From Chlorokybus atmophyticus (lineage: Eukaryota > Plantae > Mesostigma and Chlorokybus algae): a stretch of DNA of 64,000 nt. The translations under genes were made by a program, and so were the position numbers. The stretch's first letter is position 1; each line of letters begins with the position of its first letter. Positions 41,401 through 56,324 of the stretch are shown piece by piece. The stretch spans positions 563,585 to 627,584 of the forward strand of contig RHPI01002503.1 of assembly GCA_009103225.1 (NCBI GenBank), given 5' to 3'. A model generated the notes under the pieces. It searched no databases, was not told the DNA's origin, and worked only from the letters and a program-made list of their open reading frames with translations.

Positions 41401-42040
41401 TGCAGCTCTTCGGATGCAGCCACATCTTCATCATCTGCTGTGACCGATGGAGCAGGTGAGAAATCCAGGCGCGGACCGTGATCTGGCACAACTGGCCGTG
41501 TCAAAACCAACTGCTTGTCCGCTTCTTTCTCATGTTGCACAGACTGCCGTTGGCCCTGCGTACCAACATTGTACCCTGTTAGCGTGCGCCAACCCTTCGC
41601 AGCTGCACTGCACCAGCGCAACAAGACCACACTTCGCTGATATCCCAACAAGCTGCACAGCGTCGGTGCAACTTTTTGCAGTGTCAATCATTGCTGGAAA
41701 TCTTACGCTCAACGCTTATAGTTCGAGCAGGCATATGTATGCAACCAGCTGGCACTACAAGAATGTAAAAAGCGAAGACTCAAAGGTAACTAAGCTGACA
41801 AGACATGCAGACCGACCGTGCTGACTGTGAATGCACTGAGCGTAGCACACTGAAGTACTAGCACCCTGTAAAGCGTACCTGAGCTCGCACACTCAAGGTA
41901 TGAGAGCGCCTGCTAGCAAGTACGCTTCGGCTCTGTGAGCGCTGGGCAGGAAAACTGACTCGCCGCAACCCAGCGTTACGCGTGGAGAAGCTGTTATTAT
42001 GTCGCAGCAAGGATGCTTGCACAGCGAGCTGCGTCGCCAT
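38466..42040 (-). CDS. UGP3: Plastid UDP-glucose pyrophosphorylase 3 (sulfolipid pathway type)
   Basis: Transit peptide MATQLAVQASLLR... from ATG 42040. Motifs YPLGGAGDRLGLVDEVTGEALP, LLEGLIRDVQAREYL, IAIMTSEAKSNH, KPGGHGVIWKL, FPANTNVLYV, PGMIMNLKK, HQTPDGSFLD, GPLWDIVEQKI. Confidence 0.92.
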
Positions 42041-47457: not shown

Positions 47458-49653
47458 TTAACACAAGCGAAACGTCCTTGAGGATGCTACTGCAAAAGCA
47501 CGCATAACATCCAGCTCCAGGTCGAATGCATGGTGTTCATGTGGCACAAGCCACTCTGAGTCAATGTACCGCGTGAAGTAGTGGTACGCGTACACACGCC
47601 CCACAACCAACCTGCGAACCAGCATTGGATTTGGTTCAATCGCAGCAACATCGCATACTTGCACAAACAACCGCTCTCACCTCCCCTGTGCCGGGCTCCC
47701 GCACGTGTCCACAGCTGGCGCCTGCTGCTGCGCCAACCCTGCCTGCGCAAGGCCTTGCGGTGAGCCAACAACAACTCCCCTCCCCCTCGCCGCCCTGCGC
47801 GCTGCAGCGCTCGACACGGACGTGAATGTCTGCACCGTCTGCCCACTGAAGCCGTACGCCGTCACGCGCTCGCACAGCTGCAGCAGCACGTACACGCCGA
47901 GAAACCCGCTCGACGGCTGCAAGCCAAAGGGCACAGATTGGTTGCGGGAGGCGTGAAAGAGTACTTTATGTGGGTGAAGAAACCAATCACAAGAACACAA
48001 TTGTGTGGTTGCTCACCGCCACGCCGCCCGTATAGTTGGCACCCTGCACCTCAGCTGCTCTCCTATACTCCCCCTGTATCACACCAGTTCACCCAACAAG
48101 TCAACAACCACCTCCCTCCCCACTCCCACCCCACTCTCTGTCCATACCAGCATCTCCCGTGCGCGTGTCATGGCGCCGTTCCCGAGCACTAGGACACGTG
48201 CGTCAGGGCGGTGGCGGCGGACGCGCGCGTGAAGGTCAGCGATCTGCTCCGCACTCGAACGCGTCGATACGAGGGAAGCGTTGCGCTCGAGATCAGTAAG
48301 AAGAGCGGTGAACTCGCCGTGAGCAGCGTACAGCGTCGTCCACTGAGGGTTAAGTAACGTGAGTCGGCGCGTGATAGAAGAGTCGATGCTTGGAACTTGA
48401 TGACTCAAATGCTTGGGTGGTTTGTTTAAAGGTTTGGTTGTTAGATGAACATGTTGGTTGGTGGTCGTTATTGCTGTGGTGGTGGTACTGCAGCTTGTTG
48501 TTTCTAATCCGTGTGTGGGCGGACCTTCTTGTTGAGGAGGCGGAAAGTTGTTTTGGAGCCCACATAGCGCTCGTACTTGGCGGTCGGTGCTTGGTTGATC
48601 CTCATCACCGCGTCGCAGGCATCGATCTCCGGACCAAAGCTGCACAATCACGCACCCACATAGATAACACCAAAAACTGTTAAGCCGCTGTGTAGCGTGT
48701 GAAGCACGACTTATGTGTCTTTGTTCAATTTGCAATCCAGTGTGCAAGCATGCAGCATGCATGGTCGCATAACGGACATGAATTCACACACGCATGCAAG
48801 CACACACGCAGACACACACCGGCTGGCGTGAAGCACGGCGGAGTTCCCGACCAGCGCACATGTCTTGAAAGAGAAGTCTGGCGCTCTCGCCGGCAGGACC
48901 TCTGTGCTGGACCCAGATAGAAATCACTCCATTACTCGACAGAGAATTGGCACACAATGATCATCATCACAAACCCAACATGCACACATTGTCCCCTACC
49001 CTCATTGGTGATTGGGTCGTGCGGCCTCAATGCGCGGTGCGTCGCACGCGAGAGAAACAGCTTTGAACGTGCGTAAGAATGCTTCTTTGAAGTTAAAAGA
49101 TATGATGCCAGGGAGTTCAAGTCTCCCGGTACTGCAGTTGTTGTCGTTGCTGTTGTCTTAGCTGAACGCCCTCTCCCTGTAGGCAAACCCAGACACCCAC
49201 ATATCAGCATCCCAAACTAGCTTGGAACCCATGAAAGTCTATCATTCTAAAGTGTAGTGTATCATACTGTTGCTCAATGAACGCTATGGCATCACCTGTA
49301 GTTTTTTTTAGACTGTGGTCCTTTGCCCCCTTCTCCTCCGCTTCCTCAACATCCTCTCCGTCCTCATCCTCCTCAACCTCCTCACCCTCATCGTCCTCAA
49401 CTTCCCCCTCGTTCTCCACCTCATCATCTCCTCCTTCATGATTAACTTCTGTCTCACCCTTCCACTCCAGGCCAGCCAGCATGCCAGGGGATGCAGTAAT
49501 AACTGCTGCTAGCGCGCCTGGAGCCCGCGTCGCCCCCGCCAGGCGCCAGGACGCCAGCCCCGCCCCCAGCACAACCCAGCAGCAGAGTATCAGCGCCAGC
49601 ACCGTCGCCCTTCGCCTCCACCACCACCACCGAGACGAGGACGACCCGCCCAT
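47458..49653 (-). CDS. GT29 sialyltransferase-like glycosyltransferase (type II membrane protein)
   Basis: N-terminal TM and E/D-rich stem. Sialylmotif L: KTCALVGNSAVL...FGPEIDACDAVMRINQAPTAKYERYVGSKTTFR. Motif S: PSSGFLGVYVLLQLCERVTAYGF. Motif III: YHYF. Motif VS: HAFDLE. Confidence 0.88.
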
Positions 49654-49875
49654 CGCCACCGCCGCCGCCGCCAAGGCGGACGCCAGCAACCAGGAAGAAG
49701 TCTATTTATAGCTGCGGCTTTCTTGTTGTCACATGCTTACCGTTGAGTCAGTTTGAGCAGGTTAGGTCAGTCGCTAAAACTCCCGCTGCGCTCGGTTAGG
49801 CTGACTGACTCGGTGTGCGCGGTCTCCGCCGCTGCTGCGGAGGAGGAGGTGGTGGCGGAGGAGGAGGAGGTACGG

Positions 49876-51228
49876 ATGGAGGGGGCTGAACAGGTCGGTA
49901 GGCTGGACAATAGTGGGCCTGCGTGGGCGGGTGAGGTTGCGGGTAGCGCGTGGGGCGTTGTGGAGCGGTACGGCTGGTTGATCCTGGGCGTGCTGGTGGC
50001 GGTGTGGCTGGTTGGACCGGCCGTCAAGGCGAGGATCGCTGCCATATCAGACGCCCTCACAGCTAGATGTGAGGGCACGGTTGATATTGGTTGCTATGAT
50101 AGTGCCTGTGCCTGTTTGACTGCTCCAAGCCACCAGCAAGCGAGCGCCCACAGACACGCATGCGAGTTGATTGTCAGTTCTTTGTCAACGACGTCAAGCT
50201 GCAACTAGATGCTTGGCGAAATGCTCAGCCGTGTTTGTACGTGTTTGTTCCTTTCGCTTGCTACACACTGTCGGACACCAACCCTCCGATGTTTGTTTGA
50301 TCACTGTTCATCACTTGGGTCGCTGTCGACGAACGTCACTAGTTTTTTCATTTGCTTCCTCCCTAATATACCGATTGTTGCCACTTGAGACCCCAAACCA
50401 AAAAGTGTACCACCCCCGCATGTATCATATCGTACACTACCATCTTCACGACCATGATCATGACCACTACCGCTCCCGCAGCCCCCGAGCGCGAGGCCGA
50501 GTGGTCCCGCCGCGCCCGCGACGCCCGCGCCCGTCAGCAGGAGCGCGAGGCGGCGGCGTCGCGTCAGTGGGCTGAGGGGGAGCCGGAGCGCCGGGCCGCC
50601 GTCGCCGCCGCGCGACTAAGGGAGATGCAGGAGAGGAGCGGGGGGGCGGGGATGCAGTTTCGCGGGAAAGGACGCCGCCTCGGATCTGAGGTGAGAGGAG
50701 ATGAGACACAGTCGTAGTGGTGTTACATTGGGTAGAACTGTTTCAGGTGAGTGATTTGGAGTGAACGGTGAACATCGGTCATGTGCTGCGTTGAAGTATG
50801 TAAGTGTGCGATAGTGATCTGCATCGCAGTCGAGTTTGAGTTTGTCGTGAATCTCGAGCTGGCTGGGACACAACCAACATGTTGCGGTGGTCGACATGTT
50901 GTTGTGGTATTGCAGCCGTCTCAAGACTCGGAGGGAGATTATGCCAGCCCCCCCGCATGCGCGCCTCCCAGCCCGCCACCGCCACCGGCGCCACGCACCA
51001 GCAGCCTTCCACGGCCACCACCTCGCTCTGGTAAGAGAGCATTCAACACACTGCATTACACATCTCTCACATGCAACACATGGGCACTGGTTTACATAGC
51101 ATACCGATCCCCGCAACATGTGCACCGATGCAGGCCACAACCCGCTGGGGCGGTCCTCTAATGTACATGGGTTCGCCCCGAGCGGCAGCATGCGCAGCGC
51201 TCCCTTCCGCCGCCGCGGATGACGTTAG
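49876..51228 (+). CDS. SELENOS: Selenoprotein S (SelS/VIMP)-like protein, 203 aa, Sec at residue 202 (UGA 51220-51222)
   Basis: Exons 49876-50068, 50482-50690, 50916-51030 and 51134-51228 are phase-consistent (612 nt). Single TM (ERYGWLILGVLVAVWLV), charged coiled region (..AAARLREMQE..FRGKG), Pro/Gly-rich tail with HNPL...RRRG-TGA-CGT-TAG. SECIS downstream. Confidence 0.85.
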
Positions 51229-51407
51229 CTTCCCCGACACCGCGGGCCCGACATCTATGAGATGGTATTCACAAGATGTCTACCCGCGCGTGCCGGAGAT
51301 TCAATGGTGCGGTGAAGAGTGTCAGAGGTTAGCGGGTCAACCAGCGCGGTTGCCTGCAGCCCGATCGCATCTCTCTTGTGTGATAAGGTGGTGGTTGATT
51401 GATTGTT

Positions 51408-51475
51408 GGCCTCTATGTGATGCGCTGGCTGCTAAAGCTCAGAAAAGGAGCGCGGCCGGCGTGGAGAAGTGTGCC
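51408..51475 (+). promoter_or_regulatory. Type II SECIS element in the SelS 3' UTR
   Basis: GUGAU core (51417-51421). 11-bp helix II GCGCUGGCUGC/GCGGCCGGCGU, fully paired with G-U allowed. Unpaired AAA (51434-51436), mini-stem GCUC/GAGC, 3' GGAG (51463-51466). Confidence 0.88.
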
Positions 51476-51800
51476 CTAGTTTCGTTCGCACCGCGAGCAG
51501 GGCTTTTGGCCAGAGTCGATCAATTGAATTGTCAAATAGGAAATGTAGGACATGTTTGTCCATCTGTTGGGTGCTTTGCTGTTGGCACACGCCCTTCTTA
51601 TTTGCAATAGTCATTGTTGTTGCTTTCACAGTGTGAAGTTCGCACTCAACAGCTGCACATGCGACACACACATGCACGCAAGCATGCACACCAATGCAAT
51701 GCAACGTGACAGCAAAACCAGGCTGCCTTGCTACAACGCACACAACAGTGTTCAACACATCCTCCCCAAAGCAATACTTCATGACAACCTCTCATCTCCC

Positions 51801-54137
51801 TCACGGCGACTCCGACTCGGAGTTTCCCCCCACAATCTCCCTCAGCGCCTGCATCCTCGTGGGCGGGGACCCCAGCTCCACCGCTTCGGGCGGCGGCCTC
51901 TGTCTCGACGGCGGCCTCGGAAACCTCTGATGGACTGTCGACGATTGTTGTTGTTGTTGTTGTTGTTGGGAGAAGGGTGGTCCTCCTCCTGCTCCGACGA
52001 GTGGGGGACGGGTGATGCCGCCCTGGAGTGGGGCAGTTTCGGGGCGGGGTTGTTTGCGGGAGTGGGTGGAGGAAGAGGAGTGGGTGTGGGGTTTGGAGCC
52101 GGGAGGGAGGAAGGAGAGACCCTCTGGTGAAGGAGAGTGGTGAGTATGTGGTGTGTTGTGATGGTTTGGGTAGTGTTGGGAGGTTACCTGTGAATAAGTG
52201 CAGGGCCTCTGGTGGTGGACGCTGCCTTGACGGCGGCCTGTTGGAGCTCCCCTGTTGCACGCACGCACAAACAAACACACATCCACATGTGTACTCGCTC
52301 GCCATGCCCACTCACATCCCCACTTCACTACACCCACAAGGTCAACATCTCCACCTGCACTCATCACCTACCTCGCATTCCACCGTGTGCAGTCGTCCCG
52401 GCGCGCTCCCCCGTCTTCGCTGGGCGTAGAACGCCTTGAGCAGGCTGGTGGACTGGTCCACGCCAGCAACAGCGGCGTTGCCAACATTGCCAACATTGCC
52501 GACATCGTCGTCAACATCGTTGTCGTCGTCAACATTGGGTTTGAAGGCTGGAGAGAACAACTCCGCCGCCAATGCCGACAGGTCCGTCTCCTTCGTGGAG
52601 GCGCTCCTCGCATCAATGCACCCGTCTTGCATCTGTTGGAGGGTTGTGTGTTTGGTGATGACTTGATGATGAGGTGATGGGGTGGTGTTGTTGGGTTGTT
52701 ACCCTTGCTGTGTCGACACTGCTGGTTGCTGGACGCAAGTCTGCGGTGTTGAGGGAGGCGCTGCTGTAGGCCGAAGGCACGCTGGAGAGCGTGACTGCCT
52801 TCTCGTCCTCGTCCTCCTCACTGCGCAGCAATAATACGCCTTGTATGTGTCGCTTCTGGTTAAGGTGATGCATATGTGCACGCGCAGAACACACACGTGC
52901 CTTGAGCTGATGAGGCCGTCGAGCTCGTTGCCCAGCCCGTGCGACGGCACACGCGAGTGCGGACCATGCCTGCTGCTGCGTGCAGAAGAGAGGCTTTCCG
53001 GCGCCGGCGTTGTGACCAAAGCCGCCTGGTAGCAACAGAGACAAATCAATGTGTGCATCTATGAGCCATGTCAGGCACACGTACGCGCACGCATACTTGA
53101 CAGGGCAACATGTCCTCCTGTTACCATGTAGTCGCTGAGCGATATGTGATCCATGGGTATCTCCCAATTATTGACGTTGCGGTGCTCATCGTCTGCGCTG
53201 TTGTAATTGTTATGCTTGTAGCTGTTTGAGACGCCATGATGATGCGAATGCCCCCGGATTGGATGACTGTTGACGTCACTGCTGCGCTTGTTGTGTACTT
53301 CTTGCGCACGAGCTCTGGTGTGTGCGCCACTGCTGCCGGCGTCTTCCACATCCTCTACCTCGAGCTGTAATCGTTGGGTGCTTACCTCTTGTTGTTGTAC
53401 TAAGTGGAGATGCGTATGTGACAGGTAAGTATGGTGGGTACCTGTCCTGCCCATGAAGACGATGCCGAGGGAGGGCCCCTTGCATTGTTCAGTGCGCTCG
53501 GACCCTCTGCAGACACACATGTGACGTACATATCCAAAAGTATGAACGACGTACACGCACACGCATACGCACATGCGCACGCGCTAACTACAGCAACAAT
53601 GCTAAAAACAATGGCTAACTTACGCCAGCTTTTCCTGCGGGCGGCGCCTTGGAAGAGCAGCGGCGTGTCTCCCCTGCTGCTCGCTTTTGAGCCAGGGTCT
53701 TGCGCGGACCGGACTACAACAGCGTCCTGTGCACATGCACGTTGGTGTGTGTCCGTGCGTTTACCTGCGTACAACAAGAGCAACTTGCGACATGTGTCGC
53801 TTAGGCGTACGTTCATTGACACGGTCTTCATGCGGCCTTTGTTGCGGTACGACCTGCCCGCAAGCTGCAAGACGTTCTGCCCTTCACCTGCGATCAACAC
53901 ACATGCAATCAAGGTAGGATACAACCACATGTCACCACGCACTCGTACACGCACCCCTCCCACACTCCCATTACTTAACAACACGCATACCTCCCGCGGT
54001 CGACAGCGCGCGTGCCCACATCACCGAGGATGATCCCGCCCCACCCTGGCCCTGACTCTGACTCTGAACCTGACTCTGACTCTGAAGCTGTTGCTGGCGG
54101 TCCCACAGCCTACTATTGTTGTTGCTGTTGCTGTTGC

Positions 54138-54168
<31 letters not shown>

Positions 54169-56324
54169 GCTGTTGTTGTTGTTGTTGTTGCTGCTGGTGT
54201 TGTTGTTGTTACTCCCACTCTCACCCCGCCACCCCGTCCTCGACCTGCTTTGCCTCCTTCCAATTGTGTCGGGCGCAGTCCCCGCCCTGGACTCCAACCC
54301 TGTGGAGTGTTTGTCACATACATAGTATCACACACATTATCTGCCATACACAACTCTCAGCAATGCCTCAGCAATGTGTTTGCCTTGGCGTTGGGGTTTT
54401 CTGTGCGTGGGGTGTGGTGGCGGCGTGCGCGCGTTGTGGGCGGGGTGTTGAGGGGGAGGGGTGGGAGGGGGAGAGGGGGAGGGGGAGAGGGAGGAGGAGG
54501 GGGAGATGTCTCCAGGAGAGGGGGAAGCCGCACGGGTAGGCACGTATCGGCTGCTTTTGCCCTGCAACACGCACACAAGTTGGTTACATAGCTGTCCTGT
54601 ACTGTCGTGGCTACACTCTCGCAGCCAAATTAAGAGCACATCGTCGTGCACATACAATATCAATTGGAAAATGGAGCTCACCTTTGCGCCATGCGCACGC
54701 GTGCCTCTCACCGCCAGCCCCCCGTCCACACTGCCGCTCCCCTGCCATAAACACCACGCACACATCACTCCCCCTCCTTCAAGTGCGACACTGTGTGTGT
54801 ATTTGTGTGTTTGTAGCTCCCTCGTTTACCTGCCATGCGGCACGCGGGCGACGCCGATGTGCTGTCCCACCTGCCCACTGCTCTTCCTCGCCTGCTCCTG
54901 ATGTGGCCCAATAGTCCGGGGCACTCGCCCGGCCCGACTGCGCGCATGCAAGAGAAAACTATGGTTGTTGTTGCGACTCTGGAGTGTAGCAAGACAGGTA
55001 ACACGAGAAAGAGAGACGGCTTTGTATGTAACCGTACCTCTACGGTTGGCTTGCCGCTGCTGTTGGCACCTGCTGTTGTTGTCCTCACTCGGAAGCATGT
55101 ATTCCTGCATTGCAAGACAGTTGTTGGGGCTACAGCAACCAGACACTGCAACGTACACCCAGTGAACCATACGATGGGAGTCTATACACTCACCCATCTT
55201 CAAGGGTGCGCTCCATCGTTCCCGCAACACACGTTGCGTCCACCAGCGGCTAAGATTGCTCACTCCCAACAATGCAGCCCATCTAACCTATACATTGGGC
55301 CCAACTTTAGATACTGATTGTTCAGCAGGTCTTGGTTCAATCTTGTTCCAAGTCGTCTTGTGCACACCTCGCTCGGTGTCTGCAGCCGATCAAAGCCACA
55401 CATGATGAATACATCCGAGGCGGTGTCTCACCCAAAGCTTAGATAAAACCAGCAAAGCACTATGCTAGTAGAGTCATCTGGACAAACGATGAGTCTGTGG
55501 GAGCTTACGTATTCATGAACATGGCAGCATACATACTGCTGAGCCTGCAGTGCGTAGCGTGGAATGCAGTCAAGCTAGGATCAGCTCAGCATCTCTCACA
55601 CTTTGTATACTTGCCTGGCGGAGCCCCTAACGTCAGAACCACTCTCAGCCAAGTTGTGTCACCATCACCATCAGGGGCATCAGCACTCGCTACGATGCAA
55701 TAAACACCACCACCACCCAGCCAACAAGCCCGTCCAGAGCAGGATTTGTCCACGGGTTGGCCTCTGTCTCGCTTTTGCCGACAAATGTCGCTTCCTACCA
55801 TCTGCTGTCTGGCTTCTGTCCACCGCTCAGGTTACTTGTTGTCGCTTCCGAGCATCTTGCTGTACGCCGCGGCGTAGCTGAAGCATCTGTACGTCGCGGC
55901 GCACGTGAGCGACTGGACTGGACTCCGCGCTAAAGCGTCCAGTCAACGCTTGTGAGTGCGTGGATGCCTTAGCGCAGACCCGACCAGGCCAACGCCAGCC
56001 CAGCCCAAACCAGGCCAGGCTGTAGGTCACTGTGCAACGCAGCGCTTGCTTGAATCTTTTTGAACAAGGCAAACTCTAGGGCGTTGGCCGCCGCCTCTGG
56101 TGGTGAAACGACCGTGGTGTGGTGTAGCGTTGTGTGTTACACAACTCGTGTCGGGGCAGAGTGTCGCAGTGTGACTGCGTGAACTTGAACACACCTTGTG
56201 TAGGAATAATGGGCGTGGAAGGGGAGGCGTCATGGACGTCCGCGTGTTCCTCCTCTGCTGGCAGAGAGGATCCCACGCCCGGGAGCTTGCTGCGGCTGAT
56301 GCGGGAGGAGAGCAAGTTCAGCAT
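51801..56324 (-). CDS. Multi-exon low-complexity protein of unknown function; 5' end uncertain
   Basis: Many AG/GT-bounded open exons with poly-N and poly-Q tracts. A 12-aa peptide RPPSRQRPPPEA occurs twice with only synonymous differences, which supports coding status. Stop at 51801. Confidence 0.55.
54115..54210. repeat. Imperfect (GTT)n/(AAC)n trinucleotide microsatellite, probably a poly-Asn tract on the minus strand
   Basis: About 30 GTT/GCT units read directly. Confidence 0.95.

Follow-up and report, generated by a model that had tools for sequence, protein, structure and literature searches.

Does the hairpin at positions 51408-51475 of this stretch of DNA from the green alga Chlorokybus atmophyticus serve as a SECIS, and is the UGA at which the public model of the upstream gene stops read as Sec rather than as a stop codon? 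We addressed both parts of this question within the window, i.e., the whole 64-kb stretch of DNA that was analyzed. We consider it likely that 51408-51475 is a genuine type 2 (form 2) green-algal GUGA SECIS, located in the 3′UTR of a four-exon gene that encodes a divergent SelS-like membrane protein. Because a SECIS-type hairpin lies behind the UGA annotated as its stop, the gene (Chrsp44S05871) is probably an overlooked selenoprotein, with that UGA read as Sec.

Structure and rarity of the SECIS candidate

The first-pass annotation of this DNA had described a GUGAU core, an 11-bp helix, a UAAA bulge, a mini-stem, and a closing GGAG, and had read the whole as a form II SECIS. Every pair in that description was confirmed by direct reading and by script, and the element resolves into the following parts.

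51408-51475 (+): whole SECIS candidate, helix I to helix I (read directly, by script, and by folding)
51408-51414 (+): helix I, 5′ strand, forming six pairs with 51468-51475, with a U/U mismatch and a one-base bulge
51415-17 (+): internal loop below the core, 5′ side A-U-G opposite A
51417-51421 (+): 5′ core GUGAU, in which an unpaired G precedes the UGA-N side of the non-Watson-Crick quartet (read directly)
51422-51432 (+): helix II, 5′ strand, GCGCUGGCUGC, forming 11 consecutive pairs with 51452-51462
51433-51436 (+): UAAA bulge, unpaired, with the conserved apical adenosines
51437-51451 (+): mini-stem (helix III, which defines type 2) and loop, GCUC 51437-40 pairing with GAGC 51448-51 around the 7-nt loop AGAAAAG 51441-47
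51452-51462 (+): helix II, 3′ strand, GCGGCCGGCGU (by script)
51463-51466 (+): 3′ core GGAG, in which G64-A65 are able to form tandem sheared pairs with A20 and G19
51468-51475 (+): helix I, 3′ strand (by folding and script)

Helix II consists of 8 Watson-Crick and 3 G-U pairs (51422-62, 51426-58, and 51430-54) and leaves no base unpaired by script; the core-to-core span, from GUGA to GGAG, is 51417-51466. Using ViennaRNA, the SECIS fold was obtained as both the minimum-free-energy and the centroid structure of an 86-nt context, and helix II and the mini-stem were retained in both types of fold of a 306-nt proximal 3′UTR context. The hairpin is on the coding strand, where 194 nt lie between the UGA at 51220-22 and GUGA (188 nt when measured after the UAG stop), in good agreement with the distance of about 190 nt given at first pass.

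To gauge how often such a hairpin is expected, we used a strict descriptor comprising [A/G]UGA-N, a perfect helix II, AA no more than one base from the helix end, and GA opposite. This descriptor was written with the site already seen, and its single match on both strands of the window (128 kb) was the SECIS candidate. Across 100 block-wise dinucleotide shuffles, strict matches were expected 0.11 times per 128 kb when the helix had to span 8 bp or more and 0.01 times when it had to span 11 bp or more. For the 1 kb that follows a given UGA in the sense orientation, a strict match thus has a chance of roughly 1e-3 to 1e-4. A looser descriptor that follows the published SECISearch rules retrieved six candidates in the window, among which the SECIS candidate was by far the most stable, its upper stem-loop reaching -24.6 kcal/mol versus -10.6 kcal/mol for the runner-up. 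The 3′UTR is single-copy within the window. The runner-up site, at 41643-41691 on the minus strand, carries AUGA..AA..GA with a 9-bp helix; it has neither a SECIS fold nor an upstream coding sequence and was set aside as a chance match.

The SECISearch criteria (Lobanov et al. 2007, PMC2375036) call for NTGA..AA..GA with 10-13 nt between the quartet and AA and 15-39 nt between AA and GA, for unpaired runs of at most two bases and a fold that is not Y-shaped, and for energies of at most -12.6 kcal/mol for the whole element and -3.7 kcal/mol for the upper stem-loop. Both spacings of the candidate are within these limits, with NTGA-AA at 13 nt (the upper limit) and AA-GA at 28 nt, as are both energies (-28.2 to -29.3 kcal/mol for the whole element and -24.6 kcal/mol for the upper stem-loop). 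The 11 pairs of helix II are uninterrupted, and the fold has no long unpaired runs and is not Y-shaped. The additional GCUC/GAGC helix with its 7-nt loop, placed above the conserved adenosines, identifies the element as type 2.

The core residues U18-G19-A20-U21 and G63-G64-A65-G66 face each other and directly flank helix II, such that tandem G-A/A-G pairing is possible. Relative to the SECIS core consensus UGAN/KGAW (SECISearch3 paper, PMC3753652), the UGAU/GGAG core fits at K, which is G, and departs at W, which is also G and gives a U-G in place of a U-U or U-A apposition. The SECISearch patterns ask only for GA on the 3′ side (PMC2375036). The statement made at first pass that core, helix length, and apical adenosines all fit the consensus somewhat overstates the fit: the 3′ core is GGAG and not KGAW, and the core-AA spacing is at its upper limit.

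The Rfam SECIS models yielded no match at the gathering score across the whole window, nor any at E values up to 10 when 1 kb or 101 nt was searched. By descriptor, the candidate falls in the same class as the Rfam SECIS families (SECIS_1 and related), although their models do not recognize it. The SECISearch3 authors describe non-metazoan SECIS as the hardest to detect and omitted the Ostreococcus type from their consensus model as lineage-specific (PMC3753652).

Green-algal elements provide the closest comparison. A G precedes the quartet in all but one SECIS of each Ostreococcus species (PMC2375036), and GUGA_AA accounts for most SECIS of the green algae surveyed (Jiang et al. 2012, PMC3473315). 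Given that most green-algal SECIS are GUGA_AA, a GUGA core is what one would expect in a green alga and is no oddity; the first-pass annotation named it as a known variant, and in Chlamydomonas and Ostreococcus GUGA with a mini-stem predominates (PMC3473315, PMC2375036). The candidate resembles the type 2 SECIS of Ostreococcus tauri, Ostreococcus lucimarinus, and Chlamydomonas reinhardtii in its unpaired G, in the mini-stem above the adenosines, and in its presumed 3′UTR location. Such a mini-stem is present in nearly all O. tauri SECIS and is seen also in Chlamydomonas (PMC2375036). As judged from published descriptions, the candidate differs from the green-algal type in the G that follows its 3′ GA, and its mini-stem is 4 bp whereas that of Ostreococcus is long. 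Rfam excepted, the form II SECIS reading is thus supported by the SECISearch criteria, by uniqueness in the window, by strand and position, and by algal type.

The upstream gene and its likeness to selenoprotein S

Upstream of the hairpin, on the same strand, is a four-exon gene in which all introns are GT-AG. The public protein P0001 (jgi/Chlat1/6294/Chrsp44S05871, 201 aa) equals our gene model residue for residue and ends at the UGA.

49876-50068 (+): exon 1, with the ATG and coding for a short N-terminal part and the only transmembrane segment (residues 32-50); phase 1 end and GT donor; P0001 residues 1-64
50482-50690 (+): exon 2, an Arg/Ala/Glu-rich helical region with two RX5AAX2R matches; P0001 residues 65-134
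50916-51030 (+): exon 3, Pro/Ser-rich and probably disordered, holding the only Cys (residue 149); P0001 residues 135-172
51134-51228 (+): exon 4, coding part, ...HNPLG...FRRRG, then UGA, CGU, and UAG; P0001 residues 173-201
51220-51222 (+): in-frame UGA, candidate Sec codon, penultimate, at which the public protein model stops

From the stop through the SECIS candidate to 52300, no TGTAA or AATAAA-type motif was found, a result that is only weakly informative on the poly(A) site.

The best Pfam match of P0001 was Selenoprotein_S (PF06936), with an E value of 0.003-0.004 and 17.5-17.9 bits, below the gathering cut-off of 29.8; residues 28-114 are colinear with positions 32-111 of the profile. 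SelS spans the membrane once, between a short N-terminal part and a long cytosolic one, and the human protein carries its Sec at the penultimate position, Sec188 of 189 residues (PMC3628699). In human SelS, Sec188 forms a selenosulfide with Cys174. P0001 likewise has one hydrophobic segment (residues 32-50, Kyte-Doolittle 2.0) behind a short N-terminal part, as in a single-pass protein. The RX5AAX2R pattern, put forward as the motif through which VIMP/SelS interacts with VCP (PMC5725882), occurs at residues 82-92 and 101-111, in both cases as a pattern match only. With UGA-CGU-UAG at the end of the reading frame, the candidate Sec 202 would be penultimate, as in SelS.

The likeness to mammalian SELENOS (SelS/VIMP) spans the single-pass topology, the long helical region with RX5AAX2R, a probably disordered tail, and a candidate Sec at the penultimate position. 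The two differ in their SECIS core, which is AUGA in mammalian SELENOS and GUGA in Chlorokybus, and in the Cys found 14 residues before Sec in the mammalian protein. No Cys is present about 14 residues before the candidate Sec of the Chlorokybus protein, the only Cys being residue 149, 53 residues before Sec 202. Human SelS ends in GG-Sec-G, whereas the Chlorokybus protein has a Pro/Ser/Arg-rich tail and would end in G-Sec-R. Few algae have SELENOS, and those that do carry it almost exclusively in the Sec form (PMC7539508); O. tauri and O. lucimarinus possess it (PMC2375036). The predicted product of Chrsp44S05871 fits a SelS-like architecture, and we regard it as a putative member of the SelS family.

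Other searches returned little. When the whole protein was searched against the PDB, SelS chain 5kiu appeared only at an E value of 4.9, and PDB searches with exon 2 or with residues 25-135 did not retrieve SelS. Pfam searches on single exons gave no match, and a Protein Atlas search with exons 1 and 2 gave nothing usable. In the search for relatives, exons were queried singly, and whole-length queries used P0001, which matches our model as far as the UGA. With exon 1 as query, an exhaustive protein search of 1.84 billion representatives retrieved P0001 only, and a word search retrieved no candidates. Word searches of 5.8 billion proteins with P0001, both whole and as residues 1-135, found only P0001 itself; no contig on record encodes it, and metagenome scans found nothing, whether the query was the protein or a SECIS pattern that left helix II free. 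Although its architecture is SelS-like, the predicted protein is nearly an orphan at the sequence level.

Recoding and alternative explanations

If the hairpin is a SECIS, its GUGA/GGAG core would adopt a kink-turn with tandem G-A pairs in the mRNA and would be bound by SBP2. By analogy with the established eukaryotic pathway, eEFSec would bring Sec-tRNA(Sec) to the UGA at 51220-22; a single Arg codon would follow Sec before termination at the UAG at 51226-28. The product would comprise 203 residues ending in RRRG-Sec-Arg, as opposed to 201 in the public model. Chlorokybus is reported to possess eEFSec, PSTK, SBP2, and SecS, together with some selenoproteins (PMC6627142).

A SECIS-like fold could also arise by chance and have no function, in which case the UGA would be a real stop and the protein would end in ...RRRG as annotated. 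That the public model stops at this UGA is what such a reading predicts, but automatic annotation routinely ends selenoprotein models at UGA. GC-rich 3′UTRs form stable folds easily, the shuffles averaging -26 kcal/mol, and taken alone the element has an unremarkable folding z-score of -1.44. The lack of an Rfam match is also in keeping with a chance hairpin, as is the outcome of the word, exhaustive, and metagenome searches, which found no homologue to show conservation. Only 0.01-0.11 strict matches are expected per 128 kb, yet the sole match has the correct orientation and lies 188 nt behind a gene with a penultimate UGA. The looser descriptor, too, sets the site well apart from the other candidates, and the best family match of the gene has members with a penultimate Sec. 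We therefore hold a chance origin to be unlikely.

Alternatively, the locus could be the relic of a once-functional selenoprotein gene in which recoding is now inefficient or lost, leaving the truncated 201-residue protein as the main product; the unusual 3′ core GGAG, the maximal core-AA spacing, or an upstream poly(A) site could each be the cause. The departure of the 3′ core from KGAW and a core-AA spacing at the limit would both suit a decaying element. Subaerial streptophyte algae have been reported to lose selenoproteins (PMC6627142), and human SelS, which has a weak SECIS, also gives a truncated, Sec-less form (PMC3628699). Decay, however, would not be expected to leave a perfect 11-pair helix II, the mini-stem, the AAA, and both GA dinucleotides intact. 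The gene itself is likewise intact, with clean GT-AG introns across its four exons, and the Sec machinery is reported for Chlorokybus (PMC6627142), which together render a relic very unlikely. We give almost no credence to the hairpin belonging to something else, whether a fragment of a repeat or transposon, an antisense transcript, or another structured RNA. A 116-codon minus-strand ORF does extend over 51432-51782, but it is Cys/His-rich and of low complexity and looks non-coding; moreover, the 3′UTR has no second copy in the window, and the hairpin matches no Rfam family. A sequence-similarity index returned no look-alike of the 3′UTR either, though a blank there carries little weight.

Reading the hairpin as a genuine SECIS has consequences for annotation. 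With this element, Chrsp44S05871, which stops at the UGA in its public model, becomes a probable SelS-type selenoprotein, and that model calls for correction. As an RNA element, the SECIS candidate adds a member to a known kind, and the mechanism is not new. Selenoproteins are not known from land plants. The algae that branch earliest among the relatives of land plants are reported to have kept the machinery but few selenoproteins, with three in Chlorokybus (PMC6627142). The Chlorokybus selenoproteome may be undercounted, a point that matters for the manner and timing of selenocysteine loss in the lineage leading to land plants.

The proximal stem-loop and neighboring sequence

Between the candidate Sec codon and the SECIS candidate lies one further structured region.

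51231-51299 (+): stem-loop in the proximal 3′UTR, irregular, 69 nt, starting 8 nt after the UGA

This stem-loop has an energy of -32.4 kcal/mol and a z-score of -4.31; none of 200 shuffles was as stable, and the structure is kept in the 306-nt fold. In mammalian SelS mRNAs, the first 91 nt of the 3′UTR include a SPUR element and a proximal stem-loop that is conserved (PMC6844570). The Chlorokybus locus resembles mammalian SELENOS in combining a type 2 SECIS with a stem-loop right after the UGA, the correspondence between the two stem-loops being a parallel of position only. An SRE-type element would also sit at 51231-51299. More speculatively, the stem-loop may be an accessory or spacing element, perhaps one that modulates recoding. 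That a stem-loop after a penultimate Sec-UGA and a type 2 SECIS together form an ancient recoding module, specific to SelS and common to mammals and a basal streptophyte alga, strikes us as rather improbable. Were it true, 51231-51299 would be a functional partner of the SECIS and not an incidental structure, and Chlorokybus would keep a selenoprotein of the ER-associated-degradation type that earlier surveys missed.

Several other features of the window were recorded. A GGA/GGT purine-rich simple repeat, gaggaggaggtggtggcggaggaggaggagg, occupies 49838-49871 (+), shortly before the ATG and presumably within the 5′UTR. A divergent ORF at ~49310-49652 (-) starts ~225 bp upstream of the SelS-like ATG; its product, read by eye, runs MGGSSSSRWWWW... 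and continues with a hydrophobic segment and after that an acidic Glu/Asp-rich stretch. This layout suggests that the region 49653-49875 is a bidirectional promoter shared by the divergent ORF and the SelS-like gene. The window holds no tRNA genes. Beyond the SECIS candidate, at 53970-54330, long trinucleotide-type repeats on both strands give rise to poly-Asn, poly-Cys, poly-Leu, poly-Thr, and poly-Val ORFs.
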